Positions 1 to 53,800 of a DNA stretch of 64,000 bases are shown one piece after another (the stretch's first letter is position 1; every line of letters starts with the position of its first letter). The position numbers and the translations under genes are program-made. The notes under the pieces were generated by a model. That model saw only the letters and a list, made by a program, of their open reading frames with translations, made no database searches and was not told the DNA's origin. Origin of the DNA: Phallusia mammillata (Eukaryota); contig OZ281496.1 of the NCBI GenBank assembly GCA_965637545.1, positions 15,066,001-15,130,000 on the forward strand, read 5' to 3'.

Positions 1-2499
1 TTTGTTCGATGCCTTTATTTCCGATATCACATCCCCTCAAGAGCAGTTCTTCTGTTTTGCGAATGCAGCGACCCAGTGAGTCAGCGCCCTGGTTTCCCAC
101 CTTGTTGTCAGAAAGATCAAGCCTTTTCATCTGTTTTTAATGCAACAAATATTATCCGGTTTAAATCGTCTTTCGTATTTAAATATGCTGTAAGTTTAAT
201 GTTTGTCTTTTTGTCCACATATGATGTTGCAAACATGTTTCTACCGGCAGAACCACCAACCAAGTGTTGTGTAATTTCAAGATTCCGGCATCAATTTAAT
301 ATAGCGAAAAATTTAAAAAAAAAATTAAAAACGCGAACGATATATACCACGTGCAAAATTATCCCAACCATGGCAAAAGGTTTTGGACAAACGCAGGGAT
401 AAAAAATAACGGAGTGAAATAAAAATGTCTCCCCTAATGTTTTTGCCATATTAGTGTTTTCACTAAAGAAAATAAAACACAAGTTTTTACCGGCATGTCA
501 AGCATTTCGACTCTATTGCTGAGAGTTTCGACACCATCACTTTCGATTTTACATCTTTCCAGTATCAGCATCTCAATGTTTTGAACGTGGAGAGCCAGTA
601 AATCTGCGCCTGCATTGCCTATCTCGCTGCGAGAGAGGTCAAGGCACTTTAGCTGAATTTAATGCACAAAATAGTATGAGATTTCACGTCACGACAAATA
701 CAGTTAAATGCGAACACAAAACATTTTCCAGCGTACCTTGTCACTTATATTTAAGAAGACAGTCATTTATATTTAGACACTACACAGCAACAACAACAAA
801 AAAATAATTAATTCAATATCGCCCAAGTAAAACCAAATTTATCTTTTTCTTGAATGAAAAGAGGAAATATAAACGACAAATGTACAATTATTTTGTCCTG
901 CTTACATATGAATTGAATTAAATAGTGTTGTTGGTTGTATTTTTGTTGAAGTAAAGTAATTTGCTAATAAAGAAATCTTTTATTTTCACTCAACATAGAT
1001 GTATACTGTTTTACCGGGGTCTTTAGCTGCTTCACTCCATTGCAGAGATTCTCTACGCCACCACTTTCTATTTTACATCCTTTTAACAGGAGGATTTCAG
1101 TGTTGTGCACACAACCAGCGAATAAAAGTGCGCCAGTATTGCCGATGTTGTTGCAAGAGAGGTCGAGCTTCTTTAACTAATTTTTTTTAAGAATAAGTAA
1201 ATCAAAAATGTAATTTCATTTTTCTGCATTTTTCAGTAAATGTTAATCGTCACACGTCACACAATCAGCTAACATACGTCGTCAATATCTATCACAACAT
1301 TTGTAAGTGTTAGATGTAGTAATACACCTGTTTATGTAGTCAGTCGATGTTGATGAAAAGTCTAACTCACCAATCAATATATCAGCAACAATACTTACGT
1401 GCTGAATTGTTTAAACAACCCGTTTATTTATAATCATTGGCGATGTTTTTTTCAAGGTCAAATTTTTTGCAAACTTATTATTACATAAACACATCATGTT
1501 GATATCTGCGGATGTGTTGTGTTTTTACCGTTTTGCTTCGAAACGTTACACATTGATTAGAATATTTTCAACTAAAGGAGCAAACGTAAGACAGCATGGC
1601 GCTGGTATAAAGGTAATTATAACAAACAAAATTGTCTGTACAAAATAAAAAAGGGTTTACCGGCTTTATTAAATTCCCGACATTGTCGCAGATTGTTTTG
1701 AGGCTTTCAATTCCGATCTTACATCCCTCCAGATCCAATTCTTCAATGTTTTGAACGCAACAAGCAAGTGAAGCTGAGCCCAAAACGTCGATTTTGTTGT
1801 ATGAGAGGTCTAGTCGCTAATATTGTGGTAACAAATTACATTTCAGGACAAATATTATATCACATGCAGTTCATGCAATAATAATTGATTTGTTTAATCG
1901 GAAAGAGTTGATTAAAATTGTTTTGCAAATCATTTTACGAAAACCAATATTCAAAAAAATTATGAAATTTACCGGATTTGTTAGATTTTTCACCGCATTG
2001 CAAAGATTTCTTATTTCTCTATTTTCCATTTTGCAGCATCTCATCAGCAGCGTTTCAATGTTGTGAATGCATTCAACCAGAATTCTGTTTCCAAGCTGCC
2101 AATCTTGATGTAGGAGAGGTTCAGTACCTTCATCTGTTTTTTTTTACAAAGTATAACTTTTATTTGTTTTGTGGCAACAAATGCAGACAAGTAAAAATAC
2201 GCACCATCAATTTGAGTTACGTCATGCTGTTGGAGGTGTTTTTAATATGAATTTAGCCTAAATTTCTGAGTCGAAATTAGATTTAAAAGGACTTAAATCA
2301 CAATATTTGTACATGGAAAGAAAACAAGCATTTACCGACTTTGTTAGCCTGTTCACACCGTCACAAAGTTTCTCGATGCCTCCGGTTTCGAACTTACATC
2401 CCACCAGCTTGAGCTATTTTAGGTTGTGAAGGCAACAAGCTAGTGAAGCTGCTTCTGATATGCCGATTTTCATACCAGTGAGGTCGAGAGACTCTTCAA
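1..2499 (-). repeat. Tandem array of phase-0 LRR exons (~162 nt, two LRRs each)
   Basis: AG/GT-bounded exons at 2336..2499, 1973..2133, 1661..1816, 1015..1176, 491..652 and <1..130, e.g. LKKLDLSCNNIGNTGALLFAGCVHNTEILLLKGCKIESGGVENLCNGVKQLKTP. All five complete exons end CG|GTAAA. Confidence 0.9.
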
Positions 2500-4159
2500 C
2501 TGATTTTAAAGCATATTTACAATTTTTTTATAGAATTTACAAATAAACCACGCCAAAGACCAAGATCACTCGGGTAAAATTTTCAAGTCAATGTAATGTG
2601 TACTATATACAAAACACAGTCGTACCTGTGTCGCCCTATGTTGAATCACGAAGGAAAGGTTCTGGACGTCCACTGGGAGAAGGGACCTTTTGCCAAAGTG
2701 GAGCTCATCAGGAAGTTGTGAAGCCACACACGAAGCAATTTCCGGATCATTACTTTCATAAGCCCATCTGCATATTTGCTTAATTTCTTCTTTGCTGATG
2801 GATCGCTTGGGCTGGATGAAATTTACAAGCAAAGATTTTTTTGGATCAAAGATTTTGTGCAACTGTCAGGAACAAACGACTTAAGTTGATTGAAAACTGA
2901 AGGATCGCAAAACCCAAAAACAAACTTTGAAATAACTTCCCATTTTTTGTCGGCAAGTCGTTTATGGACCTTCTCAAACTCGTCGAGGGGCATAATCATC
3001 ATCATGTAGAATGCCGCTAAAAATTCCTGCCAGTTGAGATGAAAGAAACATCGAACTTCGTCAATATCCAAAATCTTTATGTTTGAAATTCCATGTTTTG
3101 CGATGGTCGCGTTTTTTAATGCATCAGACGTCACTTTCCTGACACCTGCGTTTTCGAATGCTTGGACCATGAATACAAACTCCATGTTTTGAAACTGATC
3201 CCAAGCCATCTTTGCCAGTTTGTTTAATTCGCTTTCTTGCCCTTTCAAGTTGTTGGTCATTATACATTGGTAATAAGTTTCATCATTCATCAGATAGTTG
3301 AGTGACATTATAAAGTTGGAGGGAACATTGCAGAGGGAGAACACATTGGAGTTTTGCACCAGCTTTTGTTGTATAAAGTCGTATTTATCTTTACATATCT
3401 GTCGTCCCAGTTCATCTTTCGACTTTGAATTCAATCCAAGCACTTGCACAATGAACCTCGGTCGATATGAAACATGGAGCCTGTATAATTGAGCTGGTCG
3501 TGACGTGATTATCTTCCGAGCATATGGAAGCAAGTTTCCTCCCACTAAATGCTTTAGGTAGTTTTCTGGATTAGACTCCGAATGTAGTTTGGGTTCGGCC
3601 GTTTCTGTGCAAATTGATTGGAAAACTGCCTCGTTCCAACCGTCGATAATTAGCAGTACGCTTCGATCATTGCAAATGGCGTTTAGAATACTCTTTTCTT
3701 CTTTCATGGTGTAATTTTGTTCAATCGACATGGTGGAGAGAAGAAACTGTAGAAAGGTCATCTTTCTAGTAAGGTCGACGTGTTTGATCTTAATGTAGAA
3801 TAGAAAGGATACATTTCCCAAATGTCCCTTTAAAATCTGTTTAACCCAGTGCGTTGCTAAAGTAGACTTTCCTATTCCTGCTTCTCCAACAACACCGATT
3901 ACATTTCCATGTTTTTCCACGTACTCTTTTATTGACGTTTTTGTCACCTGTTTTATATCTTGCTGCGTTGCTTCTTTTGCACAAGCAAATATTTCGTTAC
4001 AGGTGATATTACATTGCTGTTCGTCAAAAACCCTTCTGTATGGAGATGATGTTGTAACTCGTTGTCGATTTGCTTTGGTTCTGTGACTATGGAAACTTTG
4101 GTTAAAGCTAGTGGCATTTCGTCACCGGCTAGGGCTTCCACCCTTTGTTTGAGCAACAT
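1..4159 (-). pseudogene. NLR-family gene (NACHT + HD2/WH + LRR exons), disrupted; runs off the window start
   Basis: ORF 2823..3947 has Walker A GEAGIGKST, Walker B LLIIDGWNE, sensor IITSRP and FFHLNWQEFLAA. It continues after a -1 shift at the T7 run (2836-2842) into 2626..2862 (QICRWAYE..LPVDVQNLSFVI). Six spliced LRR exons follow. Lesions: TAG at 2414-2416, 2-nt insertion in exon 2336..2499, frameshifts in exon 1973..2133, probable shift in the N-terminal part. Confidence 0.9.
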
Positions 4160-4567
4160 CTTTAGTGTTGTTTTTGTTCTTTCGTTTCGTCTGCAACGTC
4201 AATACCATAAGGTTAGTTTAGTAAATACACAAAAATAAATTGTGCAAAAGTAAAAAAGCACCTTCGCTTTTCCATACAACAAAGGCATCCTAAAAACATC
4301 GAAAAGGCAGATATGCGCAAGAATACATTAGTTCCGAATTTTTATACAACTGAATTGTATACAAAAGTTTACGACAATTAAGATACAATCACCGGCGCAA
4401 GTTTCTAAGGCTGCAAACGACACCACGAACCAGTGGCGGCTCGTGCCTAAAATTTCTGGGTGTGCTGCTTCAAATTTTAGCCTTTATTGAACATATATAT
4501 GTTGGCAATATATTGGAAAACCACATTTCTAGTTTTGTAGCCATTGTTTTGTGTAGAAAAACAAGTA

Positions 4568-5300
4568 CCGTAATTTTCCGTGTATAATGCGCAAAATTTA
4601 ATTAATTTATTGTCCTAAAATCTAGGGTGCGCATTATGCATGGGTACAACAGTTTTTGAAGAAAATCTGCCTCGAAATAAAACTTGAAATCAGACCTTTC
4701 TTCTTGTTTGTTGTCTATCGCGCATCACATTTAGCCATCCTGCCCAACACACTTGGTCAGTAAATTTCATAATCGACGACACATCGTTTGATGCGATGGT
4801 GCAATCTTTGATGGTGTGTTATTGTCAAATACTGCACACTGCCCATTTAGCGACAACGTGAATGGGATGATATCATTGGCGATATGCAACGGATGGAACT
4901 AAAATTTTGTGTATATGTTTCAATTTAATTATTCTGATTTTTAGGTATTTTAATCTAAAACATATTAAACTTCATTTGTGTTTTAAAAATAAAAATGTTC
5001 TCTGCAAGTATTAAGATCGGTTCCGCTTGAACGCGACCAGTAAGATCTCGTTTGCTGTCACGATGTACCCTGCACAAATCCTAAACATTTTTCGCTATCG
5101 AGTTTGCGAGCGCATGCGCAGTGATACTGACCGGCAGAATAACATCCGGTTGTTTCAAAAGATTATCTTTTTTCTGAAATAATTTTACGTAAAACTTTGG
5201 ATGCGTATTATACATGGGTACAAGCTTTTTTCCAGCATCGACATGCCATTTTTAGGGTGCGTATTATGCACGGGGGCGCACTATACTTGGAAAATTACGG
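4568..5300. mobile_element. Tc1/mariner-pogo-type MITE
   Basis: TIRs CCGTAATTTTCCGTGTATAATGCGC / GCGCACTATACTTGGAAAATTACGG. TA duplicated at 4566-67 and 5301-02. Empty site caagTAatac is present in the paralogous copy near 23195. Confidence 0.9.
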
Positions 5301-12394: not shown

Positions 12395-14792
12395 AATTGA
12401 CTACATAAACGTAATAATGTTTATTAGATTTAACCAACAGAGATCGACACTATAAGTCCTGTAATGTAAAATAGAAGTAAACACAAAATGTCAAGTAAAC
12501 GCGAAAACTACAACCGAGGAAAGCAACACGAAAACGAGAGACTTTAAGCGGAACTAAGGAATGTAATTAAACTGCGCAGAAATACAAATAACCCTTTGGG
12601 CAAAGAGTGAACAAAATACAGAGCGGAGCCCACGAGCGTAAATTGCTTAGTAGCTCGCTGCATTCACCCTCGGTAAAAATAATGTTCACAAAACATCACC
12701 ACAATACTACACAGTCCACTCGCCATAACGAGCAGGTGACTTTTGTTCATGGGTAGAACGACGAAGATTAGGTGGTGAGTCAGCCGATTCAAGGGGCGCG
12801 GCACTGTCCACTTCAACAGCGACGTCATCTTCAGATGAAGATATCTCATCTTCTGCTGAGCTCGAAGAGTTCGGACAAGGAGCCAGGTCAGAAGTTGAGA
12901 CTGTGCTTTCCCGTCCGTTGGAATGCCGCACATGGGCGTACGATGGATTTGCATCCAGCAAGGTCACAGGATCACACAACGGGTCTCCTTTCGAGCGGAC
13001 AAACCTACGAAGAAGTACAGTGCCACGGTTCAGCAGCTATGAGGGCATCGAGGTACCAGACAGGACTCGGCGGGAAAAACTAAAAAAGCGTTCGTGAGGC
13101 GTTTGGTTAGTGGCGGTGCACAGTAGGGTCCGCATGGCATGTGGAGCATCAGATAACACTTCCTCCCAACGGCTATCGGGTAAATTGCGGTTGCGAAGCA
13201 GAAGTTTTACCGTCTTCCAGACAGTTTGGTTTGTCTTTTCACATTTGCTGTTCCCTTCAGGATGATATGGCGTGGATTGACTAGTAGCGATGCCACGCGA
13301 GAGTAAATATTGACGCGTTTCCTCGCTGAGAAAAGAAGTTCCTCCGTCGCTGTGAATATAGTCAGGAAAACCAAAAAGGCAAAATAGGTTGGAGAGGCAA
13401 CCGATAACGGTGGACGAAGTCATTCTCTTGCAATGAGAAACAAAAGGATACCGACTGTACTCATCTACAACGATTAGAAGATAAGGATTCTGACCAGGTA
13501 CTGGGCCTTTGAAGTCCATACTGATCCTTTCCCACAGTTTGGTAGCTTTTATCAGTTCTCTTGCCTGAGGCTTGTAGAAACGTGGCTTGAGTTCGGCACA
13601 CACGCGACATCTGTTGCCAGCCGATTTAGTTTCATCACTAGTATAAGGCAAATTGTGAGATTTAACAAAATGATACACATACGGGCGTATCCAGGGTGTT
13701 CAAGTGATGCATGCAGTGCAGAAAGATCTTGAAGAGACCTTAAGAAATGCGACCACTTTCTTTAAGCTTCAATAATAGCAGAGGCTTCCTTTTTAATAGC
13801 GGGGTAATTGCGTTCGCAACGGTTAAGTGTACGAGACATGAAAGCCACGGGTCGTCCCTTTTGCGACAAGACGGCAGCTACAGCAAAATCAGAGGCGTCT
13901 GTTTCCACTTAAAAAGGTCTTTTGCATTTCAAGAGAGGGGCTACACGTCGTGAAAAATTCTTAATCCACTTAGCGTAGTAAGACAACATTCCTGGTACTC
14001 TTTTCAGTTCCTTTGGTGAAGCTGGAGGTGACAACTCAAATAAAGGCTGCAAACGATTTGGGTCAGGTCGAATTTCATTGAAGGAAATACAATGTCCAAG
14101 AAAGTCCAAAGTAGTTGTTCTAATTCTGGACTTTTCTTGATTTATAGTAATGTTATTTTGCGAGCATCTTCAAGAAGACGACGAAGGCTGAGATCGTGTT
14201 CCTCTAACGTAGCACCGGTAACGGTGATGTCATCAAGGTACGCGTATACCTTATGCAACTTATTGTCTTGAATAAAATCATCAATGGCGCGTTGGAAGGC
14301 AGCCACGCCATTCGTCACGCCAAATTTCGTCACGCGTCACGCTTCAAATGCGGTATACGGGCGTTCGTTATCCAGCAATGGAACTTGATGGTAAGCAGAA
14401 CGGAGATCAAGACGGCTGTAGAACCGATCTTGAGCAATTAAACTTACAATTTCCTCAATCTTAGGTAGAGGATAGGCATCTAACTGAGTATATCTATTGA
14501 CCGTGACAGAATAGTCAACGACGAGTCGTTTCTTGTGACCTCGTGAAACGACTAACACCGGCGCTCTCCAGGGAGAACGGGCAGGTTCAATAATATCAGA
14601 TTTCAGAAGCCGTTTTACTTCAGCATTGACAAAGCGTAAGTCTTCTTTGCTATATCGGCGAGACCGAGCGGCAACAGGTGTACAACCAGGCAAAAGAAAT
14701 TCGAAAAGTCGAGAAGGCTTGAGTGTTGCAGCGGGTAATTCCAACAAAGAAACGCCCAAAGAAGCGATACGAAGCGGGGGGTTCAGCGCCTC
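12395..14792 (-). mobile_element. Ty3/Gypsy LTR retrotransposon, pol half (RT-RH-IN) plus 3' LTR, degenerate
   Basis: RT motifs DLRSAYHQVP and AYLDDITV. Integrase ISMDFKGP, HSDGGTSF, YHPEGNSKCEK (13037..13678). LTR ~12395..12711 begins TGTAGT on the minus strand. Confidence 0.9.
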
Positions 14793-16592
14793 TTCTTCTT
14801 CGATTATGCAGCGTCTTTTAGAAATTGAAGATTTAAACCTACTTAAAGCAGCCGAAATCGCTGAAAATCTTGCCAAATCACAACAACAATCTCTCTTGAT
14901 GGGTAAAAATTCATTAGTTGCTTCGGCACCCTCGAAAATCGCCGCCGGCAGTACTGAAAGCGCCGCTAGTTCACTTGCTCCGTTGTACCACGATGTGCCT
15001 ATGGCCACTGCTCGACGTACAAATCGACCCCGGGCAAAGTCTTGTTATTTCTGCGGCGGTGCAATGCATCGCAGCCGATCTGCTTGCCCGTCTCTTGAAG
15101 CTGTGTGTTGTAACTGCGGGAAAAGAGGACATTTCTCCCAGTTTTTTTGAAGCAGCCCCTCTTCTAATCAAAGCAGCTCTCGTTTGCGTCCCACCTCAGC
15201 TGTGTGTTTCTCTGCACGATGCTATATTTCAAACGCTTTCAAATCCCACTCTCTCGCTGGAGCTCCCCTAAGTCTGGGACTCGCTCTCGCAGACGGCTCG
15301 TTGGAATCTAGACCAGTGAAAGTCTTGATTGATTCTGGTGCCTCCGGTAACTTTATCAGCAAACAGGTAGCTCAGTCACTTTACTTACAGACATCCGGCC
15401 CTCATACGCCCATTACCATGGCTTCTTCTTGTTATCTATGGCAACCTCTGGCTCTACATCGGCTACAATCTCTTTACTTGGCCGTTCGTATTCGCTGACT
15501 TTCGGTATTTTAAAGCATGGGTCGGCAACCTTTTTTCTACTGCGGACCGCATTTGAAACTAAAATTTTATCGCGGACCGGCCTTCAAAAACCTACAAATA
15601 TTTAGCAATGAAAACGCCTAAATTAGATAATATCATCGGGATACATGAGCAAAGTGTTTTGAAGCATTTACCCTGAAAAAGTATACAGCCCGGTAACGAA
15701 CTCGTCGCGGACCGGCGGGTGCCGACCACTGTTTTAAAGGACCTTTGAGCCGATGTCATTCTTGGGCAAGATTTTCTCGAGAGACATCAAGAAGTGACTT
15801 GTTGTATGGGAGGCACTGAACCCCCGCTTCGCATCGCGTCTCTGGGCGTTTCTTTGATTGACTTACCCGCCGCAACACTCAAGCCTCCTCGACTTTTCGA
15901 ATTTCTTTTGCCTGGTTGCACACCTATTGCCGCTCGGTCTCGCCGATATAGCAAAGAAGACTTGCGCTTTATCAATGCTGGAGTAAAACGGCTTCTGAAA
16001 TCTTATATCATTGAACCTGCCCGTTCTCCGATGTGAGTCGTTTCACGAGGTCACAAGAAACGACTCGTCGTTGACGATTCTGTCACGGTTAATAGACATA
16101 GTCAGTTAGATGCCTATCCTCTACCTAAGTTTGAGGAAATTGTAAATTTAATTGCTCAAGATCGGTTCTACAGCCGTCTTGATCTCCGATCTGCTTACCA
16201 CCAAGTTCCTTTGCTGGATAACGAACGCCCGTATTCTGCATTTGAAGCGCGTGGTAGATTTCATCCAAAACATTACATCCCCAAAGCACCTGACCCAAAC
16301 ATTATTTTTACCGAGGGAGAATGCAGCGAGCTATACTAAGCAATTTACTCTCGTGGGCTCCTCTCTGTACTTTACTCACTCTTTGCCTTAAGTGTTATTT
16401 GTATTCCTGCGTAGTTTAATTACATTCCTTAGTTCCACTTAAAGTCTCTCTTTTTCTTGTTGCTTTCGTCATTGGCAGTTTTCGCGTTTATTTGACATTT
16501 CGTGTTAACTTCCATTTTACATTACAGGACTTTTGTGTCGATCTCTGTTGTTTAAAGGTAATAAACATTATTACGTTTATGTAGTCAATTAC
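14793..16592 (+). mobile_element. Second copy of the same Gypsy family: gag C-terminus, protease, RT start, internal deletion, 3' LTR
   Basis: QRLLEIEDLNLLKAAEIAENL, knuckles CYFCGGAMH..C and CCNCGKRGH, protease LIDSGAS. RT start 15812..16260 is homologous to 14340..14792 (inverted). 16298..16592 is an inverted homolog of LTR 12395..12690. Confidence 0.85.
15516..15731. mobile_element. hAT MITE inserted in the Gypsy protease-RT linker
   Basis: TIRs CATGGGTCGGCAACC / GGGTGCCGACCACTG, 8-bp TSD TTTTAAAG. Confidence 0.9.
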
Positions 16593-18419
16593 TGCAGTTA
16601 CAAACCCAATTACAAGAGAAAAACGCTTCTTTATTCCTAAGTGTTCAAACCAACAAAGGTCCTTTTGAAAAAAAAACGCAAGATTAGCAAGAAATCTTTC
16701 CAGAAGAGTTGAAGACGTCTCTTGTTTGCTCACATTGCAGATATATGCCATTCCTTACGATAACGCTCGAGCCAAGATGAAGGGACTTTGACCGCCACCA
16801 CGCACAGTGTTGCTGAACAAAAGCGTCGCACCAGACGGGCATTTGCCTTTTAACATAGTTGACCCAGAAACCCTGTTCCGAATATTTCTCAAAGCGATGA
16901 CTTGACCAGCTCTTATCGAATATTCTTTGGTGGATTTTTTATGATATGTATTATTTTGATTCACTCTAACATTCAGCAATGACATGTTTCTAGTAACAAT
17001 GGTATAGTATGACTGTCTGTAAAACTAAAAAAATGATACAACGTACATGTTTGAATGCGGGATTTGTATACTGTGTCCGATTCGCATGAGCATCAAGCAC
17101 CGATTTATTTTAAAGATATACAATGAGGGTCTGGGTACCACATAGGTCAAATTCATTTTTGTAAACGAATATTTTGGGGTCTCGATTGGTTGATGCTTAT
17201 GATATTTGGGTTCTATTTTTACATTCAAAAATACTTCATTTAAACATGAAGGACACCAATATAATGCAACATTTAGCTATGAGATGTTTTAAAGCTTTTT
17301 AGACAAAGTAAGTAAAGCAGGTAACATTTTGACTGAAGTTGCGACTGTTGTGCACTCACCCGTAACTAAAAGAAAAACAGATGCACAGTCCACAAGATTG
17401 CAAGTACGAGTGCTGGACACCCATCTCATTCGTGTGGGCAACAGTGTAGTAATGCATATAGTCATTTGATTGTCATCCATGCAAGCAGAAAACATATTTC
17501 ATGACACAGAGGTTTGTCTTTGCTTCAGAGCGGGGTAGTAATAATTCATTGAAGAATTCAGGGTGTTATATAGATTTTTTAGGTTTATATCAAGACAATA
17601 ATGCCGCGGTGTATGTAAATTTGGTACTTCACGTTAAACTCAGTAAATTTGTGTAACATATGAGGAAAAAGAAAAACCAATGGGACGATTCCTGCAGGTC
17701 TCATTTATTGTTCGTCTGTTTCTATTAAATGTAGTCTTAAATTTTTTTACAACGAGCAAAAAAATATGATTAAATAAAAACTACTCTTTGTATATGTTAA
17801 GAAGAGGTGATATTGCTTCGGCTTGTTGTTTGTTTGTTTGAAACAACAATTTTAGTGAAAACATAATTTTAGTAATAATTGATTTCGTAATTCCTGTTCA
17901 GCAATTTAACAAAGACGTCAATGATCATGTGATTTTAATTTTAGGCGAGAAGTGTTTAATGTACAAGTTTCATGAACGCACAAGTTTTTGAAACCTGTGA
18001 TGGCTCTTTGCGTTTTTTGAAGCGCTGACCACAGAAAAGTATTGGGAGTTTGTAAAACCACTCTTCGCATTATGTCTTTTGCTTTCAAAAGTGATTACAT
18101 GTTTAAGAAAAATATTGTTACGTATTGCATTGAACTTTTTGTTTTCCTTCAAAAATATTTTGCTAAGTCACGTGCCATACAGGCCGAATGTCAAAATCCC
18201 GACAGACAAAAATTAAAATAACGATAGGTAAATATTAAATTCCGATAATCACTGGAATCCAATCGACGATGATTGATATTCCGATATCAGCGAGTTAAAC
18301 ACCACCCACCAACGAACGAGTTAGTTTACTAGCTAAATGAATCTTGTCAGTTCCCAATCTTTTAAAATCACACTGGTTTTATAGACTTTTCTTTGTACAT
18401 CCGGCAAATTTGTGCAAAT

Positions 18420-18620
18420 CATCTCGCTACAATCGAGACAGGGCCTCAGAGTATGTATCGTCGGAGAGACGGACAGGTTTCACTACGCGCCTGAAGGAAC
18501 AGCAAAGATACGTAACAAAGGGATGTCTGGAAATCGGCCATGTTGCTGTAATTGCCAAGGGACAGGGTACAGAAAACGCTGGTTTTTAGAATCTGAAACT
18601 CACGCGCCAAACGATAAACA
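18420..18620 (+). pseudogene. Degenerate GIY-YIG endonuclease remnant, probably from an old Penelope-like element
   Basis: Two overlapping frames give IVGETDR and FTTRLKEQQRYVTKG, resembling the PLE motif YxGETGRxFxTRLKEH. Confidence 0.45.
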
Positions 18621-18806
18621 TAAAAACAAATGTTCTAATGCCGATAAGCTGTCGGTCGCTTTTACACCCCATAAACACGGAATTTATCTACGTTATCGCC
18701 GTTTTTTTCCTTGTTTTTCACCCTCTTGGTGTTATAACAACGACTGTGTTGGGTAGCTGACATTAACCTCTTGTAGGACGTCAACACGTCTGATGACTTG
18801 TACTTA

Positions 18807-21800
18807 GAATAAGTAAGGTAATTTGATTGAAAATGAATATGAGTGAAATTTTGTTACCTGGAAGTACTGAGAGTTTACAAACTTCCTCACATCAGATGTT
18901 TTCTACCACACAAAAGTCTGAAGAAAGTATTCACAGTGGGGTTGAAAACAGTCATCTACCTATTCCAATTCTCAAAGAAGAAACAAAATTAAATAAACTG
19001 AAGAACTTTGGGTCAAAAGTCAGCTTGGGAAGAAACAAGGTGGAACCTTTGTTTGATGAAAATCGGCCAACATCAGCACCAGTTTCCTCATCAGTTGGTG
19101 GATTTACTCTGCAAAATAGCCCGAAAACGGCTATAGATGAACTTCGTCATCAGCAATTTTATCACAAACTAAAAAAAACCTCCCTTGTTCAATCCACCAA
19201 CAAGCCTAAGGAGCAATCAGCACTGATTAAAGAAAAAGAGCCTGACTTGACACAAACTGATGTGTTTCATGAAACAGCATATATTCCATATGAGTATGCT
19301 CATGCCATGATTAGTAGAATTGTTGATGATATGAAAAGTATGAAACTGAATCATCTCTCAATTGTTGCTAAAATTGAAAATCAGTACCAATCGATTGAAA
19401 ATGAAACTCAGACCAAGTTTGAGACATTTCTTCATACATTACAAGCAAAGCATCAGTCAAAAATTGATTCTTTTCACCATGTGATTAGTATTTTAAAGTC
19501 ACGATTAGCTTCCTCAAGTCAAAGTTTGGACACCATTGATAGCCTGAAGTTGAAAAATAAACAGCTATTACAAGAAAAAACATCATCTTTGAAAGCTAAA
19601 AAAGAAGCAGCCCAAGAAATTTTTTTCATGCCACTTGTAAATGATAAAAAAGAGGTACCTGGGGTTGTGGAAGAAACTGATGAACAAGGGGAAAAGATTG
19701 CTGATGACTTACAACAAACAGAAAAGTTATTACAACCAATCGCAGAGCAAAATGATGAAGCTGATGCAATCGTCAAACCTTTGAAAACAAATGCCACTGG
19801 AAAAATATTACAAGTGGATATTGTTGAGGACACAATAGATGTTGATTCTATACTTAAATCTGATGATGTAACACAGTTCCTAGATGAAACAGAAGATGAC
19901 ATCATGACACCATCATCAGAAGATTCAAATTATGATTCAGAGAAAACTTCAGAGGGTTTTATATCTATGAAAGCAGAGGTTGCTGCTGTTGCACTAATGA
20001 TTGACGGAGATTACAAATCTGCACCAGCGGCTAACTTATCAGAAAAAGATGTCTCGAATGTTAAAATGAAAAGACCCAAATCAGCAAAAAAACGTGGGGT
20101 AGACCAGCAACTGCAAAAAAGTCGCAAAATGCTGGTCGAGTTAAAGAAACAGAACGATGCATATTCCAAACAAATACAGTCTCTCGAACGGCAAATTAAA
20201 TCTGTTGGTCCAACAACAGGAAGTTCGGCTGGTGGTGTTGACAAAGACAAAAAGAGAATGGAAAAGCAAGTTAAAGATTTGGAAAAAAAGCTTGAGTTCG
20301 AAATCAAAAAGCTGGAAAAAATGAAAATGTCCAACACTGATTTACAAGGCAACTTACAAGCATCCTCTAAGGAATTGGCTGACCTGAAAAAAAAACTTAC
20401 AGCCCAAGAGCAGGAATGTGCACATCTTCGCGAATATGCTGGTGCTGGAGTGGTGGCACTACAGCAGGTGTCCGTATTACAAAGCGAAGTCAAAGATTTG
20501 ACAAATATGAACAAAGTCCTGACAGAAAACTATAACTCCGAAAGAATCTTAAGAAAAAAGTACTACAACATGGTTGAAGAAATGAAAGGAAAAATTCGCG
20601 TGTATTGCCGTGTACGTCCGTTGAGTTCCACTGAAAAGCAAAACAAAAACAAAAGCGCTGTGTTTTCCCCTGATGATTACACGGTAAAAGTCGAGCAAGC
20701 CCGGGGAGATCTGAAAGAGTTTCAATTTGATCAAATATTTACAGAGTCGAATAGTCAAGAAGACATTTTCGAGGATACAAACAGTCTGGTCCAGTCAGCG
20801 GTCGACGGATACAACGTGTGTATATTTGCATACGGGCAAACGGGCTCTGGAAAAACGTACACCATGATTGGCGACAAGGAACAAAAAAATCCTGGTATTG
20901 CTCCTCGAGCATTCAGAAGAATTTTTGATCTGATAAAAGCGAACCAACAGAAGTTTAATTTTCAGATTTCCTGCTACATGCTTGAATTGTACAACGAAAA
21001 ACTGATAGATCTCTTGGGTAAAAGTCAAAAGTCCGACGTACGACTGGACATAAAAAAAGACAACAAGGGGATGGTATTTGTCCAAGGATGCACAGTTGAA
21101 ACAGCTGAATCTGCCGATGGTTTATACGAAATTTTTTCGAAAGGATCTGAAAGTCGTCATATTGCTTCGACAAACATGAACAGTGCAAGCTCTAGATCCC
21201 ATCTTGTCATCGGAGTTGTAATCGAAAGTACAAACTTGGCAACTGGAGCTGTAACACGTGGAAAGTTGAGCTTGGTTGATTTGGCCGGGAGCGAACGTGT
21301 AGGCAAAACCGGAGCCACTGACACTCAGCTTAAAGAGGCAAATTCTATCAACAAATCTCTCTCAGCTTTGGGAGACGTGATTTCTGCCTTGTCGAGTGAA
21401 CAAGGGTTTATTCCCTACAGAAACAACAAACTTACCATGCTGATGCAGGATTCCCTCGGTGGAAACGCAAAGACACTTATGTTTGTGAACGTTTCACCTG
21501 CTGACTACAATTGTGCGGAGAGCGCAATTTCCCTGACTTACGCATCGCGAGTAAAACTAATTACCAATGATGCCAGCAAAAATGCCGAAACGCGTGAGGT
21601 TGTCAGACTGAAACAAATTATTGCCAAACTGAAAGCTGGAGAGTCGGTTGATGTCGACAGTTAAATCTGTGCCAATGCATCATTTTTAAAGTTTTTATCT
21701 GTGTACAGCCATATATAACACTGCAGTTGTGTTTTTAGGTTTTTTGCTCTCTCACTTGCAGTCACACCGCGTAGTTATTACTGTGCTTATGTACGATTTA

Positions 21801-22106
21801 GGCCATTCTAAAGCTAGACTCAAGGAAGATTTCTACGCTGTTCTATTTGTCAACGCACAAACGTGTCATTCATTTCATTCTTGTGTTGAATCAAAATGTG
21901 TTGAACTTTTTGAAAACAATATATTTGAAAAGAGGTTACACCATATCACTGAATTACTCAATTTTTCAAAAAGTTGTTGTATTTAATATTTGAGTTGTTT
22001 TACAAATCCCCTATTCCTTGCAAGGTCTGGTCCATGTCTTCACAAATTGCTTTGATCTTGCACTTTTCCGAATAAAGACAATCTGCGATTTTAGACAAAA
22101 AAAAAA
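18807..22106 (+). other. Processed retrocopy unit containing the kinesin ORF
   Basis: TSD CTTGTACTTA at 18797-18806 and 22107-22116. The unit starts with GAATAAG (last 7 nt of SL), has no introns, and ends with AATAAA 22071-22076 and A10 22097-22106. Confidence 0.88.
18833..21664 (+). CDS. Kinesin-14, C-terminal motor, KCBP/kinesin-C-like (calmodulin-binding type); intronless intact ORF of 943 aa
   Basis: Coiled coil, then neck ERILRKKYYNMVEEMKGKIRVYCRVRP, P-loop FAYGQTGSGKT, switch I NSASSRSH, switch II DLAGSE, and C-terminal helix REVVRLKQIIAKLK as in KCBP-type motors. Confidence 0.93.
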   Translation: MNMSEILLPGSTESLQTSSHQMFSTTQKSEESIHSGVENSHLPIPILKEETKLNKLKNFGSKVSLGRNKVEPLFDENRPTSAPVSSSVGGFTLQNSPKTAIDELRHQQFYHKLKKTSLVQSTNKPKEQSALIKEKEPDLTQTDVFHETAYIPYEYAHAMISRIVDDMKSMKLNHLSIVAKIENQYQSIENETQTKFETFLHTLQAKHQSKIDSFHHVISILKSRLASSSQSLDTIDSLKLKNKQLLQEKTSSLKAKKEAAQEIFFMPLVNDKKEVPGVVEETDEQGEKIADDLQQTEKLLQPIAEQNDEADAIVKPLKTNATGKILQVDIVEDTIDVDSILKSDDVTQFLDETEDDIMTPSSEDSNYDSEKTSEGFISMKAEVAAVALMIDGDYKSAPAANLSEKDVSNVKMKRPKSAKKRGVDQQLQKSRKMLVELKKQNDAYSKQIQSLERQIKSVGPTTGSSAGGVDKDKKRMEKQVKDLEKKLEFEIKKLEKMKMSNTDLQGNLQASSKELADLKKKLTAQEQECAHLREYAGAGVVALQQVSVLQSEVKDLTNMNKVLTENYNSERILRKKYYNMVEEMKGKIRVYCRVRPLSSTEKQNKNKSAVFSPDDYTVKVEQARGDLKEFQFDQIFTESNSQEDIFEDTNSLVQSAVDGYNVCIFAYGQTGSGKTYTMIGDKEQKNPGIAPRAFRRIFDLIKANQQKFNFQISCYMLELYNEKLIDLLGKSQKSDVRLDIKKDNKGMVFVQGCTVETAESADGLYEIFSKGSESRHIASTNMNSASSRSHLVIGVVIESTNLATGAVTRGKLSLVDLAGSERVGKTGATDTQLKEANSINKSLSALGDVISALSSEQGFIPYRNNKLTMLMQDSLGGNAKTLMFVNVSPADYNCAESAISLTYASRVKLITNDASKNAETREVVRLKQIIAKLKAGESVDVDS

Positions 22107-22124
22107 CTTGTACTTATTTGCCGG

Positions 22125-22264
22125 ATTCTATTTGAATAAGAAAATATGTATTTTTGCTTAATAACAGTTATGTTTTGTGGCATCAAGGTTATGTGAACTG
22201 ATTGTTACCTCAAAGAAAATATTATGGAAAAGTACGAAAAAGTGAAGGTCGTTGGAAAGGGTGC
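22125..22264 (+). pseudogene. NEK8: SL-headed 5' retro-fragment of a NEK8-like kinase mRNA
   Basis: Exact SL at 22125-22140 with no GT after it, an 83-nt UTR, then ATG 22224 MEKYEKVKVVGKG(A), similar to the NEK8 N-terminus MEKYERIRVVGRGA. Truncated by a hAT end. Gene identity rests on only 13-14 residues. Confidence 0.65.
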
Positions 22265-22318
22265 AAAACATCTAGGGGGTGCTGCAATTCCGCAGACCCC
22301 TCGCACGAGCCGCCCCTG
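22265..22318. mobile_element. Isolated right end of the hAT-like family seen at 23061..25079
   Basis: TAGGGGGTGCTGCA..GCACGAGCCGCCCCTG matches 25033..25079. Confidence 0.7.
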
Positions 22319-22752
22319 GTAGAGCTACTGACACAGGACCTCACAACACACCGGTTTGGGAATTTTTGAATCAGCAATTATTGTCACCGTAAACGCCTGT
22401 GGAAATTCTAAAACCGGCGTGTTGTGAGTTCGGAAGAGCTACTTACACCATAACTCACTTTCGATAGGTGGCGCAGGAGCTGAATTATTTATTTAGCGGC
22501 TAAATGGGGGCAGGGTGGGGAAGTAAGGTTTTAAAATTTTACATTAATAGGTAAATGTTTGGGTTAGTTTCATTGAATTTTTGATGACAATACCTAACCC
22601 CAACAGCCCTAACCGTAGGCATGTTTTGAGATATACCATTTTCAATCGGATTGTGCTCTTTGCGCCACCTATCGAAAATTTGGTGAATGTGCGGCTGAAG
22701 TGAGTTATGGTTTTAGTAGATTTTGCTGTGAGTTTTTGTTAGTAGCTCTACC
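22318..22752. mobile_element. Foldback MITE, same family as 44423..44805
   Basis: Ends GGTAGAGCTACTGAC / GTTAGTAGCTCTACC, internal inverted TTCGATAGGTGGCGCA. No intact TSD here. Confidence 0.75.
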
Positions 22753-23060
22753 ATCAAATTATACGTTGATATTTAAACTGTCACGAGAAACTACATTAAC
22801 GGTGCGACTTAAAGTCCAGAAGCATGACAATAAATTGTGGACCTAGCATCAAGGCAAACAACACACAGACATACATCTGAAACCTGTCCTACAAATGAGA
22901 CTATGGGCGCTAATGGGTTTAACTAATTACTTGGATTGACATTGCAACCCTTTTTTGTGTGTTCGTAAGAGTGAGGAGATTTTGGCTACTTGTCGTGTGT
23001 GGTCTCGTAATTCACAGGCATGTTGCTTTACCATTGCGACAAGCTTGATTGATTCGTTAC

Positions 23061-25079
23061 CAGTGGCGGCTCGTGCCTAAAATTTCTGGGGGTGCTGCTC
23101 CAAATTTTAGTCTTTATTTAACATATATAAGTTGGCAATATATAGAAAAGCCACATTTCTAGATTTCCAGCCATTGTTTTGTGTAAAAAAACAAGTAATA
23201 CAAATCTTAATTAGTAACTCCATTGTGACGTAATTTTCGTTACGCATATAATGTATACGAGTGTAAACAGCAGACAGTGTATCATTGGGGAGTTTTGTTT
23301 ACTTGCATGGCAACGGGCCAAACTCAACAACATGCGGTAATAATGTGGCACAAAAACACACGTGACACAGATTTAAAATGAAGCGAATGTTAATACGGCA
23401 AAACACTCACAACAATATATTGAACAAAGTAGTAATAATTGGACGAAAAGTATTTCAGTTAGACAACATTGAAGAATAACTGGTTATAACAATGACCACT
23501 AAGTAACACACTTGCTATTCTTTCATTAATATGGTCATGTTTCATTTGAGTAACTTATAGTCACAGTCATTGTTTCAACATATCTCATGACACTTCACAG
23601 ATTATTGCCACACAAAAAAACTAGCCACAAAGCTTTTTATTGGTATCATAACTGACAAATTTAACAACCACATTACATTTGTGTCAGAACTTGGTTATTT
23701 AAACATATTTTCTTTAAATTTTGTGTACAGACTAACAATTGTCTTTCAGTTTGCTTATAATTCCCTTTTTTGAAGTGCAATACTCCTCCAAGCTTTGAAA
23801 TTTACAACAATCTCATATAAATTTAATCCATATGATGAAACCTGTTTGTTTCTATTTAGCGCTAGCACTGCAAATGCAAGTCTTTTGGAAATAATGGTGT
23901 CCCTTAGAAAAGTTTGCATCCTTTTCAGTGTTGAAAAGAACCGTTTTGCCTTAAGGACTCATGGAAATTGCAAAAAGGATTTTTCATCTTAGTAATTTAA
24001 CTTGTCAAAACATCATCGAGATTATTTTCAAAGTAATCATGAACATCAGATCTACAGAAACATTTTTATTTCAGTAACTAGCTTTTCTTTGTCAACAATA
24101 GGATATGCTTGGTGGCCACTACTATCTCCTCTGTAGAATGTTCGTTCTTAAGAAACACTTCATGTGAAGCAATTTTTCAGCTACTGTTTAGAGAAACAGT
24201 ACATGTCCAGTATATCAATACACATGATTGCACTTGGTTGCAAATACTGTCCACATGGTGTGTTAAGAAGCCAAAACTTTAAATGGTCATCACTCAGTTA
24301 TTTCAAAATTCCTGTTGGTTCTGCATTTGATATTGCCTGAATTTCAGTGAGGCATTTAACTTCACAGTCACAGAGCTATTTTTCTTTGGTAGCATTCAGA
24401 ACTAAAACTGAGTATTTCTTGTTGTTGCCTATTCCTGCATGACATATTTGGAATAGCAGATGTTTTATCCCATTCTGTCTTAAAACTTTTTAATTCAGTT
24501 ATTTATTATCAATGTTTATAATAATGTATTTATCATAAAGGTTAATCGTGATAACTGCAAAAACTGAAGCCCACTAACAGTCATCTTAAAAAGTCATGAC
24601 TAACCTTCAAACAAATAAATTGATAGATGGCAAAATCGTTATTTAACTATACTCACTGCCGAACTTAAGAATATAGTACACGGGTTTTGCTTTGGCACAC
24701 AATAGACCCGGAACAGACGAATACATGCTGGATTGCCGGTTCACACGCTACGTGATTGATGGAGCTGCGCCAACCGCAGCACCCTGTCGCCTATTTCGCC
24801 CGGCATGTAGCTTTTCCAAGTGCACACAGCTACAAAACGTCACGAAACTGGAACTGCAGCTCCAGCAAAGATAACTTATTAATTTCGTATTTTTTGAAAA
24901 GGTGATCAAGGGGCAAATTATGCTTATATATTGCCAACGAATCAAAAAAGTTGTATGTAATATTATAGTAGGAGGTAAAAGTAGGTAAAGATAAAAATTA
25001 AAATTAAAAAAAAAAAAAATTAGGTAAAAATATTAGGGGGTGCTGCAGCTCCGCAGCACCCTAGCACGAGCCGTCCCTG
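23061..25079. mobile_element. Non-autonomous hAT-like element, copy B (both TIRs)
   Basis: TIRs CAGTGGCGGCTCGTGC / GCACGAGCCGTCCCTG. Homologous to 4431..7110 without the two nested MITEs. TSD not recognisable. Confidence 0.7.
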
Positions 25080-33144: not shown

Positions 33145-34255
33145 TTAAAACTCTTCTTTAACTGTGTGAATCAAGGTGTGTCTTTTCAGTACTCCACTTC
33201 GGGTAAAGCTTGTTGCACAAACATCGCATCGATGAGGTTTCTCTCTGGTGGGTGCGTGTGTCAACATGTGTGTTTTCAGATTTCCACGTTGTACAAAGCT
33301 TTTTTCACAAACTTCACATCGATGAGGTTTCTCATTGGTACGTATCAACATGTGTATTTTCAAATGTCCACCTTGTGCAAAGCTTTTTTCACAAACTTCA
33401 CATCTATGAGGTTACTCATTGATGTGTACCATCAACATGTGTCTTTTCAAACCTCCACCTTGGGCAAATCGTTTTTTTGCAAATAAGACAAAGATGACGT
33501 TTCTCTTCAGTGTGTCTCAACATATGTCTTTTCAAATTTCCACTTTGGGTAAATCTTTTTTCACAAACAGCGCATCGATGAGGTTTTTCATTCGTGTGTA
33601 CCGACATGTGTTTTTTCAAAGTTTCTCGATGGCGAAATCTTTTTTCACAAACATCACAGCGATGAGGTTTTTCGTTGCTGTGTGTCTTCATGTGCCTTTT
33701 CAAAATTCTTCCTTCGCGAAAAACTTTTTCACAAACTGTACAACGATGAGGTTTTTCGGTAGTGTGTGTCAACATATGTATCTTTAAATTACTACCTTGA
33801 CCAAATCTTTTTTCACAAACATCACATCGATAAGGTTTTTCGTTGGTATGTGTCATCATGTGTCTTTTTAAATGTGAACCCAAAGCAAATCGTTTTTCAC
33901 AAGTATGACATTGATGGGGCTTCTCCTTAGTATGTGTCAACATGTGTCTTTTCAAATGTCCACTTTGGCCAAATGTTCTCTCACAAACATTACATCGATG
34001 AGTTTTCTTTCCACTATTAAGATTTGACTTCTGTGATTCCAAATGTTCATCTTTATTATTCTTCTTTTCACAAACATCCCAAGTGTGGGCGCTAAGGTGA
34101 TTTTTGAAAGCATTTTTGGATGCAAAGCATCCTTTACGAATTTTGCATTGGTAATCACTTACTTTTTTGCTAGTTTGTTGTTGGTTGGAAGATAGTTGAA
34201 ACGCATTTTCCTTTTGCGAAGATGGTTGCTCAGATTCCGAATCCAGGGTTTTCAT
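33145..34255 (-). pseudogene. Intronless C2H2 zinc-finger array gene, disrupted
   Basis: ORF 33416..34255 with repeated HTxEKPHRCxVCEK. Frameshift at a T7 run near 33472 and an in-frame TAA, then more fingers to 33145. Confidence 0.85.
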
Positions 34256-34809: not shown

Positions 34810-34825
34810 ATTCTATTTGAATAAA
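34810..34825 (+). other. Orphan SL-like sequence (15/16)
   Basis: ATTCTATTTGAATAAA. No GT donor and no recognisable ORF follows. Confidence 0.55.
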
Positions 34826-50390: not shown

Positions 50391-50868
50391 GTTAAAATGT
50401 TTTGAATTCTCAAACTTAACTAAACTTCAAAATCTCAAAGAGATACATGTGCATAAATGTATTTAAGACCTCACGCCCAAATGAAATGCCTTTTTGTGTA
50501 CTATTTTAGTCAGAATCATGAGATATTGTTTTATTATGGGTCCCCTTCCCAGAAGGGAACACATCTTGATTTCACTCTGTTTTTTTCTTTTTTCAGCCGA
50601 AGCGTTTCCATGCACTTTTGGCATGAAATCGTTGGTGGATTTGGATGAAAATTTCACAGATGGTAGATATAGTTATGTAGATGTGCCATCCGCTTCGTTT
50701 GAGTTAATAACCCCAATATTTACCCCACTAGCCCCCAAAATGTAAAACGTTTTTGCATGTTGCTGCGCACCACAAATGAAAAAATTCTGTGGAGTAACAG
50801 TATAGTAAAGGTCCCAGAGAACATGCTACTTGTGTTTGTGCATTACTTGGAGGGCCGAATGGCCTGGC

Positions 50869-53800
50869 TTCATTCTATTTGAATAAGGTAAGCATCATAC
50901 GCTGACCTTGGCACATTCAATAGAATCAAAACCCCCCCTGCATGTTTGGTGTGCTATTTTTTTGCTTGCTTTTTGTTTACTTTATTGCTTTAACGCACTA
51001 ACCCTAGGCAGCTTGCTAGTTTATCTTTGATATTTGTTCAGTTAGTGGGCGCAAAGGCGCATTGCAGGGCTTTTTGTTTCCTTCTTTTACTTTCTAGATT
51101 TACCACAAACTCTAGTGTAGGCCGCTTGGTAACCCCTTTTTTTGGTAACTTTTTTTCTCTTGTAAGTTCTTTGTAGTTTGTAGTAATTTAACTTGCCCTT
51201 AAGGCCCCCTAACCGGTAATCCCCTTCTTCGTGCTAAATACCCCGTGGTTTTTTGGTAGTAGATAGTTGATAGTGACTTAAACTTTTGTGTGTGTCCTCT
51301 GCCCCTAAGGCTTGTCGCGCCACCTAGTGCTCTATATCCCCCGGTCTCTTCCGCCCTCTTACTTTTTCACGCTTCTGCCTCCGCTCTTTAGCGGCGCCGG
51401 AAGAGGAAAACGTAAGAGCGCTCTTTTACTGCCACGGCGAGTCTCCCTGGCCTCCGCTCCCCGGCTTGTGCCTGCGAGCGGCTCCTCGGCTCTTCCCCGT
51501 GTTTTTTCCTTATCTACGTTTTTGCCAATTAAGTCTGCCGACTTAATTGTTTTTGCTCGTCCTTTGCTATCTTTCCGCCGCCTAAAGTCACAAAGCACCT
51601 CCACGCCAGTTTAAACCAAATTTTCGTCACACTAATCAAAACAGGCCACACCCCTGCCACGCCCTAAATTCTAAATCTGCCCAAAACTTAAATCAAAAAA
51701 CAAAAAGATATCCGATTAATTGTTTCTGTTATACAATTTAATATTTAAATCGCATAACCCCCTTCCGCATTTTTAATATTTAAAAAGAACTCTCCCACTT
51801 TCCCCCTTTTTTTCTGATAATTTTTCAATTTGCTGTAAACGTGCGCCCCCCCCACCTTTCAACTACAACCTACCTTATCGTTTAACAACCTTCAAAACCA
51901 CTACAAAAATGGTCCTCAACATTGAACGACACCTCTTAGAAGACAGAACGCTGCATATTACCGTAAAATCACACGAATATTATGATCTGGCTAAATTCAT
52001 CGCGCTGTTCACCCGCAACGGGATTCTTCCCTTTTATGAAGATACGCTTGAGGGAGTGCGATGTCTTAATCGAAAAAAATCGATCTTTAAAATCACTTTT
52101 AGGAACGACGTGAGAAATTGTGAGAAACATACTGAACTTTACACAAGAATCTACAGAGGCCTAACCTTTGGGAATAATGGAGACGACAAAATTACTCTTC
52201 TTGCCGAAAAACCCCCCCGGCCCAACACTAAAATAACCCTTTTTCCAGTCCCACTTGAGTTTAATGAGCGACATCTTATGCATATATGCGAAACAACACA
52301 AATCTCAGAAGAACAAACAATCCACCCCCCTTGGATTCCAATTTAGCAATAAAGGTCCAGAAAATCTTGCCCACTTTCTTGCAGGTCTTGATCAGAAAAA
52401 GACACAAATCTTAAACCAACCAATAAACCCTGACTCGGAAAAACAAAAAGAAGCTCTTCCAGATGTCTCAAATTCTTCTCCTCCTTTCAGTACCCCTCAG
52501 CCAATCAAGAACACCCCACCTGTAGAAGAGTTACTAAATTCTGCACCACCAGTGTTGCAGACTGCACCTGAAAAACCCCCTTTACCATCCAACCTGGCAC
52601 CAAAATCCGACCAAAACCTAGCTGGCAATCATCCAACTCCAAGTCCTACTCTTAGAAACCTCTTTGCAGTTGGCGCCGCCAAACAATTACAATTCGGTTC
52701 ACACTCCAGCTCCTCTAATGATGAAATTCCTCAGACGCCGTTACATACCCCCCTTCAGCCAAACAAAGATGCCCTCAAAAACGCCCAAGTTATTCCCAAC
52801 GCAACCATTAGCAGTGTAGAACATGCCTCTCCCATTGAATCTTCCCCAGACGGTAATGGAGCTTTAGTAATCAATACAGATGAATCGACAGAACAAAGCA
52901 AAGAAGAAGACAAAGACCAGGAACAAGAAGAAGACAAAGATGAAGGAACAAAACGGAAGTACAGTAGCAATAGCAGTGGAAACAACAGCTGTACCAAAAA
53001 AGAAACTAAAAAAACAAAAACTAGTACACACCCCCTCTCCCCCTTCTAATTTCCCATGGCGCACAACAATCTAAAAATTGTAACTCTGAACACAAACGGT
53101 TTCGAACGCAATTACAATCACATTGAAAATTTCATACGCAAATCGAATTCGGATATCTTTTTGTTTCAAGAAGTACACAAATTAAACAAAACTCTTTTCG
53201 AAAACTGGTCTCAAAAAAACAATTTAATTTATTTCTTTAATTCTCATTGGTCTAATCCATTCCAAAAAGAACATAAATTTGACGGCACCCTAATTTTAAT
53301 AAAACAAAGTTTTGGGCATGACATAAAATTCCATCACGAAATAATAACTGATCATCGTATCCAAAAATTAATTTTAAATTACTACAAACTACAATTTAAT
53401 AGTATGCCAATAAATCTATTTAACATTTATTTCCCTTCCGGCAACACCGCAATCAAAAAAAGAATAGAACATATCCTTAAATTAAACGATGTCTTAGAAA
53501 AACATCAAAACCAACCTCAAATCCTCGGCGGCGACTTTAATCTACTCGACGATAAAATAGACTCATTGACTTCCGCATACCAAATCAAAAGCGACACTTT
53601 AATTTGGCGTGAAACAATAAAAAGATTTAAACTTACCGACTACTTTCGCTTCTTTTATCCTCATAAAAAATTCTACACCCGAATAGGAAACAAATCTTCG
53701 ACCCGTTTAGATCGTATTTACTGCAACACATACCTCCTAAGTAAAGTATTTAAATTCGAACACCACCAAATTATCTTTTCCGATCATTGTTACGCGCCTA

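Follow-up and report, generated by a model that had tools for sequence, protein, structure and literature searches.

A spliced-leader-tagged kinesin-C retrocopy in the ascidian Phallusia mammillata, probably a young, functional and only detectable copy of its gene

How does a chordate kinesin gene come to lie in the genome without introns, framed by a short direct repeat and with the remains of a spliced leader at its head? The locus in question belongs to a stretch of 64,000 nucleotides from Phallusia mammillata (assembly GCA_965637545.1, contig OZ281496.1, positions 15,066,001 to 15,130,000 of the forward strand), hereafter the window. On its + strand a single intron-free open reading frame (ORF) runs from 18833 (ATG) to 21664 (TAA) and encodes 943 amino acids with no internal stop. 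It is by far the longest ORF of the window; the runner-up, of 589 amino acids, is part of a long interspersed nuclear element (LINE). An earlier note, made from the letters alone, had described an undamaged 943-residue frame between short repeats, with GAATAAG at its head and AATAAA followed by A10 at its end, and all of these coordinates were verified. In our judgement the locus is probably a young, retroposed, transcribed and functional retrogene, the only detectable copy of its gene, which was relocated by the event rather than made intron-free by it.

What marks the locus as retroposed? The 10-mer CTTGTACTTA is present only at 18797-18806 and 22107-22116 in the whole window, where 0.12 copies are expected, and two or more copies were found in none of 100 shuffles. 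The pair borders exactly the mRNA-derived part, with one copy at each end. GAATAAG (18807-18813) directly adjoins the 5' copy and equals the last 7 nucleotides of the 16-nt spliced leader (SL). At the other end, AATAAA (22071-22076) is followed by 20 nt and then by A10 (22097-22106), which abuts the 3' copy of CTTGTACTTA without a gap. A repeat search of 18300-23300, with a minimum length of 14 nt, revealed no longer repeat flanking the insertion. The final A of the 5' repeat copy could belong to the SL instead, as its first base; the target-site duplication (TSD) is taken as 9-10 bp. For read evidence we used the assembled contigs of four runs: X1 and X4, which are RNA-type, belong to different studies and comprise 15-19 Mb of contigs each, and X8 and X12, which are DNA. 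The locus is thus composed as follows, with the basis of each assignment in brackets.

18765-18806, + strand: upstream flank within the contigs of the RNA runs (X1 match from 18765, X4 start at 18777)
18797-18806, + strand: 5' TSD CTTGTACTTA (repeat count, X4 allele)
18807-18813, + strand: SL remnant GAATAAG (X4 allele: flank + (A)TTCTATTTGAATAAG + ATGACATAACTAAG + TAAGG...)
18814-18832, + strand: rest of the 5' untranslated region (UTR) of the copied mRNA (sequence reading)
18833-21664, + strand: intron-free coding sequence (CDS), 943 amino acids, kinesin-C / KCBP-type kinesin-14 (ORF, Pfam, structure and protein matches)
19137-19207, + strand: 71-bp segment missing from a common allele (contigs of X1, X4 and X12; bubble 19108-19237)
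20609-21562, + strand: kinesin motor domain, residues 593-910 (PF00225, E 4.9e-111; motifs)
21563-21661, + strand: C-terminal neck mimic, regulatory helix and acidic tail (alignment with the sea-urchin protein and KCBP)
21665-22096, + strand: 3' UTR with the poly(A) signal AATAAA at 22071-22076 (sequence reading)
22097-22106, + strand: templated poly(A) tail A10 (sequence reading; A9 in one X12 contig)
22107-22116, + strand: 3' TSD CTTGTACTTA (repeat count)

Is a 7-nt motif sufficient to diagnose a spliced leader? The 16-nt sequence ATTCTATTTGAATAAG is identical to the published Ciona SL (PMC1488885). Three other exact copies and one with a single mismatch occur in the window, against 0.11 expected; since this is far above the expected count, the genome uses this leader and carries many DNA copies of it. 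A 383-nt X4 contig is the strongest evidence on the origin of the remnant. It matches the window exactly over 18777-18806, that is, flank plus repeat, and then contains 22 extra letters, in the order CTTGTACTT-ATTCTATTTGAATAAG-ATGACATAACTAAG-TAAGGTAATTTG, or a complete SL plus 14 more bases of 5' UTR (ATGACATAACTAAG). The 22-nt-shorter allele of the window is also present in X1, X8 and X12. Because the X4 contig joins the flank to the full SL, the population holds an allele in which the whole leader still sits at the TSD junction. For the same reason the 7-nt remnant of the window is the derivative of a 22-nt deletion and not of 5' truncation, and the copy was originally of full length. The loss is best described as one 8-nt and one 14-nt deletion, the latter between TAAG direct repeats. 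The earlier note was therefore right that an SL remnant lies at the expected site, but the leader was originally joined to ATGACATAACTAAG-TAAGGTAATTTG, 14 nt further upstream, and not directly to TAAGGTAATTTG. Its proposal of a retrocopy of a trans-spliced mRNA is likewise upheld: the hallmarks are real, an allele with the full SL exists, and at least seven introns are missing. Elsewhere in the window, an SL-like 16-mer with one mismatch (ATTCTATTTGAATAAA, 34810-34825) is followed by AT-rich sequence and may be another decayed SL-headed copy.

What kind of kinesin was copied? Pfam places PF00225 over residues 593-910 of 943 (E 4.9e-111), which makes this a kinesin with a C-terminal motor, and the motor motifs are intact (P-loop GQTGSGKT, switch I SSRSH, switch II DLAGSE). 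Among solved structures, plant KCBP is the best match (PDB 3h4s and 1sdm, E 4e-128 and 2e-125), with KIFC3 (1.7e-86), Ncd (E-72) and Kar3 far behind, and the alignment to KCBP also takes in the neck mimic and the first part of the regulatory helix. Orthologues were collected by a word search with residues 545-943; searches from the N-terminal 500 amino acids gave one close match, and a word search with residues 1-440 gave none. Over region 545-943 the closest proteins are those of a species represented by metagenome contigs (P0001, 1005 amino acids, 81% identity), Clavelina lepadiformis (P0013, 996 amino acids, 79%), Ciona intestinalis LOC100187504 (P0014, 954 amino acids, 76%) and Styela clava (P0016, 1562 amino acids, 72%). 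After the tunicates come proteins of about 1600 amino acids from echinoderms, amphioxus, hemichordates, molluscs, cnidarians and sponges. The S. purpuratus 'calmodulin-binding carboxy-terminal kinesin' (P0030) shares 70% identity over neck, motor and tail; the window's C-terminal tail NDASKNAETREVVRLKQIIAKLKAGE and acidic end are nearly identical to it and align with amphioxus and holothurian proteins and with KCBP.

A tree built from the C-terminal 480 residues unites the tunicates in a clade (99/96) inside the animal kinesin-C group, with Styela outermost; Clavelina, Ciona, the window protein with P0001 (83/94) and two ocean-metagenome sequences form a group without resolved branching. Judged by sequence, the window protein thus falls within the animal kinesin-C (calmodulin-binding C-terminal kinesin) group of kinesin-14, which would make it a minus-end-directed motor, and is not plant KCBP proper. 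The earlier assignment to a KCBP/kinesin-C-type kinesin-14 is borne out for the animal kinesin-C group by structure matches, orthologues and tail alignment. Like sea-urchin kinesin-C, the protein carries its motor at the C-terminus and has a nearly identical tail (NDASKN..RLK..IAKLK.GE plus acidic end); unlike it, it has 943 rather than about 1600 residues and is encoded without introns. The long N-terminal coiled-coil part of kinesin-C is much shorter in the Clavelina, Ciona and window group. Unlike plant KCBP, the window protein has no MyTH4 or FERM domain by Pfam, which reports only the Kinesin and Microtub_bd families; its helix reads AKLK where KCBP has AYWK, so the Trp is absent, and its tail ends about 10 residues later. 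The two ocean-metagenome members of the tunicate clade (P0076 and the protein of scaffold L055) have long branches. At 2093-4864, over 2.8 kb, L055 encodes a 923-residue kinesin-C ORF that has no introns; a separate 69-residue kinesin piece comes after it. Intron-poor kinesin-C may have arisen more than once in tunicates.

When were the introns lost? The Clavelina gene spans 23.8 kb and could be resolved into at least 12 exon blocks; the Styela gene spans 26 kb. The two genes share introns at positions that correspond to window residues ~586, 652, 712, 780, 833, 872 and 902, and the window ORF is continuous across all of them. The Ciona orthologue also has an intron-free CDS (L007, 6001-8865, translates directly), as has P0001 (six metagenome contigs). 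Could the window gene then be an ancient intron-free gene, in place since the Ciona ancestor, with repeat, A-run and GAATAAG mere coincidence? We regard this as extremely improbable. Ciona and P0001 do resemble the window in having intron-free orthologues of similar length (954 and 1005 amino acids, 76-81% identical over the C-terminal 400 residues). However, they lack the retro-hallmarks and have no flanks in common with the window: their loci show no spliced leader, A-run or flanking repeats, and each has an ordinary pyrimidine-AG acceptor upstream. An exact 10-mer pair placed precisely at both ends, an A10 located 20 nt past AATAAA, and a complete SL in the X4 allele also speak against coincidence. 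Between the window and P0001 or Ciona, the proportion of synonymous differences (pS) is 0.89-0.91, which is saturated, and motor-domain dN is 0.15-0.19. Because perfect 10-mers and an A10 could not outlast saturated synonymous divergence, the insertion appears to be much younger than the splits from Ciona and the P0001 species.

Saturation of synonymous sites led us to reject dN/dS between species as a dating tool. A tblastn comparison of all flank ORFs from the Ciona, Clavelina, Styela and P0001 loci with the window and with each other gave no hit outside the kinesin itself; as no synteny is detectable between any of the loci, location gives no help. The earlier note had also held that lack of a parent combined with intronless, syntenic orthologues in related ascidians would speak against a retrocopy. 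Intron-free orthologues do exist and no parent was found, but no synteny is detectable and the insertion appears far younger than those orthologues. Since the nearest relatives are already intron-free, the missing introns probably predate the insertion, and the source gene was probably intron-free in this lineage before its recent re-copying through mRNA. Alternatively, the copy might conceivably stem from an independent, first-time retroposition of an intron-bearing parent. The earlier note had assumed such a parent in the same species; none is detectable at >=80% likeness in the contigs of X8 or in those of the RNA runs. A metagenome scan for Phallusia mammillata contigs returned none, the best match (75% identity) being to the P0001 species.

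Is the copy transcribed? The unique flank 18300-18567 has coverage in the DNA runs but no depth in X1 and X4, and a 2.4-kb X1 contig of a neighbouring mRNA starts with AGAGTACG and GG ahead of the spliced leader, letters that we take to be the end of a template-switch oligo. Because of the missing flank depth and these adapter-like letters, we infer that X1 and X4 are cDNA. Their contigs cover 18765-21930 (X1) and 18777-21992 (X4) of the window. The X1 contig of 2115 nt differs by 4 substitutions and one 6-nt indel (99.8% identity), that of X4, with 2180 nt, by 13 substitutions and 9 gap letters (99.4%). Such near-identical contigs in two cDNA-like runs indicate that the kinesin locus, or a sequence identical to it, is transcribed. 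Since the contigs take in 30-40 nt of flank upstream of the TSD, the new transcript 5' end arises outside the copied mRNA. The X4 contig begins right after the AG of cttgtAG/GAC (18775-18776/18777), which is suggestive of a candidate 3' splice or trans-splice acceptor that would be used here. Directly upstream, 18568-18769 is a high-copy repeat, with a depth in the DNA runs of 15-20x that of the flank and a presence in the RNA runs too. Many contigs diverge from the window at 18611-18668 and 18769, and Rfam finds no family at gathering score in the window, this repeat included. Possibly the retrogene draws its promoter or its 5' end from this upstream repeat.

Is it the only copy? In X8, depth is 34-54 along the whole CDS and 31-35 in the flank, as expected for one copy when matches of >=80% likeness are counted. 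The X1 and X4 contigs contain no further transcript of 90-99% identity, and protein searches returned no other close protein from Phallusia mammillata. An allele lacking the insertion, with a single CTTGTACTTA, had been suggested as a check; no such empty site (a joint skipping 18807-22116) was reported in X8 or X12. The retrogene therefore seems to be the only detectable copy of the gene in the species, which would mean that the parent has been lost. This evidence covers the 64-kb window and the contig sets of four runs, and contigs and filters cannot prove absence.

What speaks against a functional, relocated gene? Several observations do, of which some concern the reach of the data. The contigs cannot give strand, ends or level of the RNA, and the RNA nature of the runs is itself deduced; the search for other copies covers the window and the four contig sets. 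In X12, depth is about doubled over 20042-20443 and 20846-21247, with partial-depth contigs that contain frameshifting gaps of 7, 1, 3 and 2 nt, and the match of a 1.5-kb contig is limited to 19186-19343, at 93%. These pieces of lower identity are possibly the remains of the parent, another retrocopy, or a related strain in the sample. Might the window copy then be a classical duplicate, an extra to a parent kinesin-C that persists, with or without introns, elsewhere in the genome? The diverged X12 pieces over parts of the CDS would fit, the hallmarks point to a source mRNA of recent date, and our view is restricted to the window and four contig sets. We nevertheless think it improbable, given the flat, single-copy depth of X8 over the whole CDS and the lack of a second near-identical transcript or of another close protein of the species.

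Other observations bear on function. The coding differences that were listed number 21, 17 of them nonsynonymous and 4 synonymous, which is close to the neutral site ratio of 3.7:1, and 19 of the 21 lie before the motor, mostly in the N-terminal part. An allele that lacks 71 bp (19137-19207) forms a clean two-arm bubble (19108-19237) in X1, X4 and X12; it is common, being found in three of the four runs and at roughly half depth in the DNA run X12, and is absent from the DNA run X8. The deletion shifts the frame and leads to a stop after about 113 amino acids. A 71-nt skip as a small intron was rejected, as its ends read AT..CT and the joined form occurs in a DNA run. Finally, a copy this young would keep its frame open whether or not selection acted on it, so that the intact ORF is weak evidence of function.

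Could we be looking at a retropseudogene in the making, accidentally transcribed from its landing site after loss of the parent, in a species that is losing kinesin-C and with a frame that is open merely through youth? We consider this unlikely. The common frameshift allele in DNA and RNA runs and the near-neutral ratio of listed differences are in its favor, as are the residues E583 and D830, private to the window allele, against D and A in other alleles and in orthologues. Against it, diversity of the motor domain is 4-6x lower than that of the stalk and 3' UTR. In X4, for which the list is complete, motor plus tail show 2 differences in 1056 nt versus 11 in 1127 nt of stalk plus 3' UTR (Fisher p 0.023), which suggests but does not prove purifying selection on the motor domain. 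The other indels of the CDS in the main contigs (6 nt, 3 nt, which adds an Asp near the end, and 21 nt) are all in frame, whereas the 3' UTR has indels of 5 and 1 nt. Motor motifs and regulatory tail are all intact, and the gene is kept in every other sampled tunicate. Even the deletion allele could restart its main frame at Met159. This residue lies within the first block that is conserved with P0001, and the resulting protein would retain that block and the motor.

How would a young, functional retrogene of this kind have come about? A mature kinesin-C mRNA, SL-capped and polyadenylated 20 nt after AATAAA, would have been copied into DNA by a LINE reverse transcriptase, and priming at a staggered chromosomal nick (target-primed reverse transcription) would have generated the 9-10-bp TSD. 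A poly(A)-recognising LINE, putatively of the Tx1-type kind, would have acted in trans on the kinesin mRNA. The allele of the window would then have lost 22 nt of leader and 5' UTR, and the insertion, apparently present in every sampled animal, would be transcribed from or through its upstream flank. Within this scheme we infer the responsible LINE, the loss of the parent, the function of the protein and the way in which the new 5' end is made. The window holds two LINEs with ORFs for an apurinic-type (APE) endonuclease. The Tx1-type LINE (50859-56962) has an A15 end and lies between the two copies of a 10-bp TSD, ATGGCCTGGC, the same architecture as that of the kinesin copy; because its tail and TSD style match, it might have supplied the reverse transcriptase. 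L2/CR1-type LINEs normally recognise their own 3' ends, and the L2/CR1 LINE of the window is a less likely source. The head of the Tx1-type LINE reads SL + GTAAGC..., like an unspliced SL gene.

A second leader lies close by. At 22125-22265, an exact full SL starts 8 bp past the 3' TSD; behind it come a UTR of 84 nt and the start of an ORF, MEKYEKVKVVGKGAKHL, which we presume to be NEK-kinase-like. Contigs of 2.3-2.4 kb in the RNA runs start with the SL, match this head at ~92% and differ after 22265. The segment appears to be the leading part of another, older SL-tagged retrocopy that was interrupted at 22266 when an element with inverted-repeat arms (22303-22321 and 23058-23076) inserted there; the rest of the kinase-like copy past 22266 was not found with a 30-mer from the mRNA contig or in the ORF lists. 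Do leaders attract further leaders? In a more speculative scheme, which we hold to be doubtful, the retrogene would be recycled as in dinoflagellates: a fresh SL would be added at cttgtAG/GAC (18776/18777), 29 nt upstream of the relict leader, to give two-leader mRNAs from the full-SL allele. The landing 8 bp upstream of the SL at 22125 would be explained by SL-gene-associated, poly(A)-tailed Tx1-type LINEs that integrate next to leaders, and leader-headed copies would seed further insertions. The window as a whole is repeat-rich and gene-poor; it also contains a NACHT-domain fragment (2823-3947, - strand), integrase and reverse transcriptase pieces of an LTR retrotransposon (13037-15008, - strand) and a 279-residue C2H2 zinc-finger ORF (33416-34255, - strand).

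What does such a locus mean? If our reading is right, a chordate gene has been caught soon after retroposition, with TSD and A-tail intact, the SL in one allele, transcription under way and no parent detectable. It would follow that in ascidians the LINE machinery reverse-transcribes trans-spliced mRNAs of the host, and that a copy made in this way can turn into the working gene. Set beside the intron-free genes of Ciona and the sister species (P0001) and the intron-rich genes of Clavelina and Styela, this would suggest concretely how tunicate genomes came to lose so many introns and to shuffle their genes.

How does the locus compare with known systems? Orphan retrogenes, that is, retrocopies that replaced their parent, have been described in mammals. 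As in these, the retrocopy in Phallusia is the sole detectable, expressed copy of the gene; unlike in these, its hallmarks are still perfect, leader-bearing and leader-deleted alleles segregate, and the source was probably intron-free. Because the hallmarks are perfect and both leader alleles still segregate, replacement would have been very recent. That a spliced leader in the genome proves descent from an mRNA is documented in dinoflagellates, by the relict DinoSL (PMC6050394, PMC5585692, PMC12014239). Like the DinoSL retrogenes, the kinesin copy opens with a leader that is added only by RNA processing, which proves passage through a mature mRNA. In contrast to them, its host is a chordate, its leader has 16 nt and it bears the classic LINE hallmarks of TSD and A-tail; tandem relict leaders from repeated recycling are part of the dinoflagellate picture. 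A literature search found no report of leader-tagged retrogenes in tunicates, which is not proof of absence. Retrogenes themselves are well known; what is new is a live, apparently sole-copy, SL-tagged retrogene with leader-bearing and leader-deleted alleles. As DinoSL does in dinoflagellates, the genomic SL provides a simple tag for a genome-wide search for such events.

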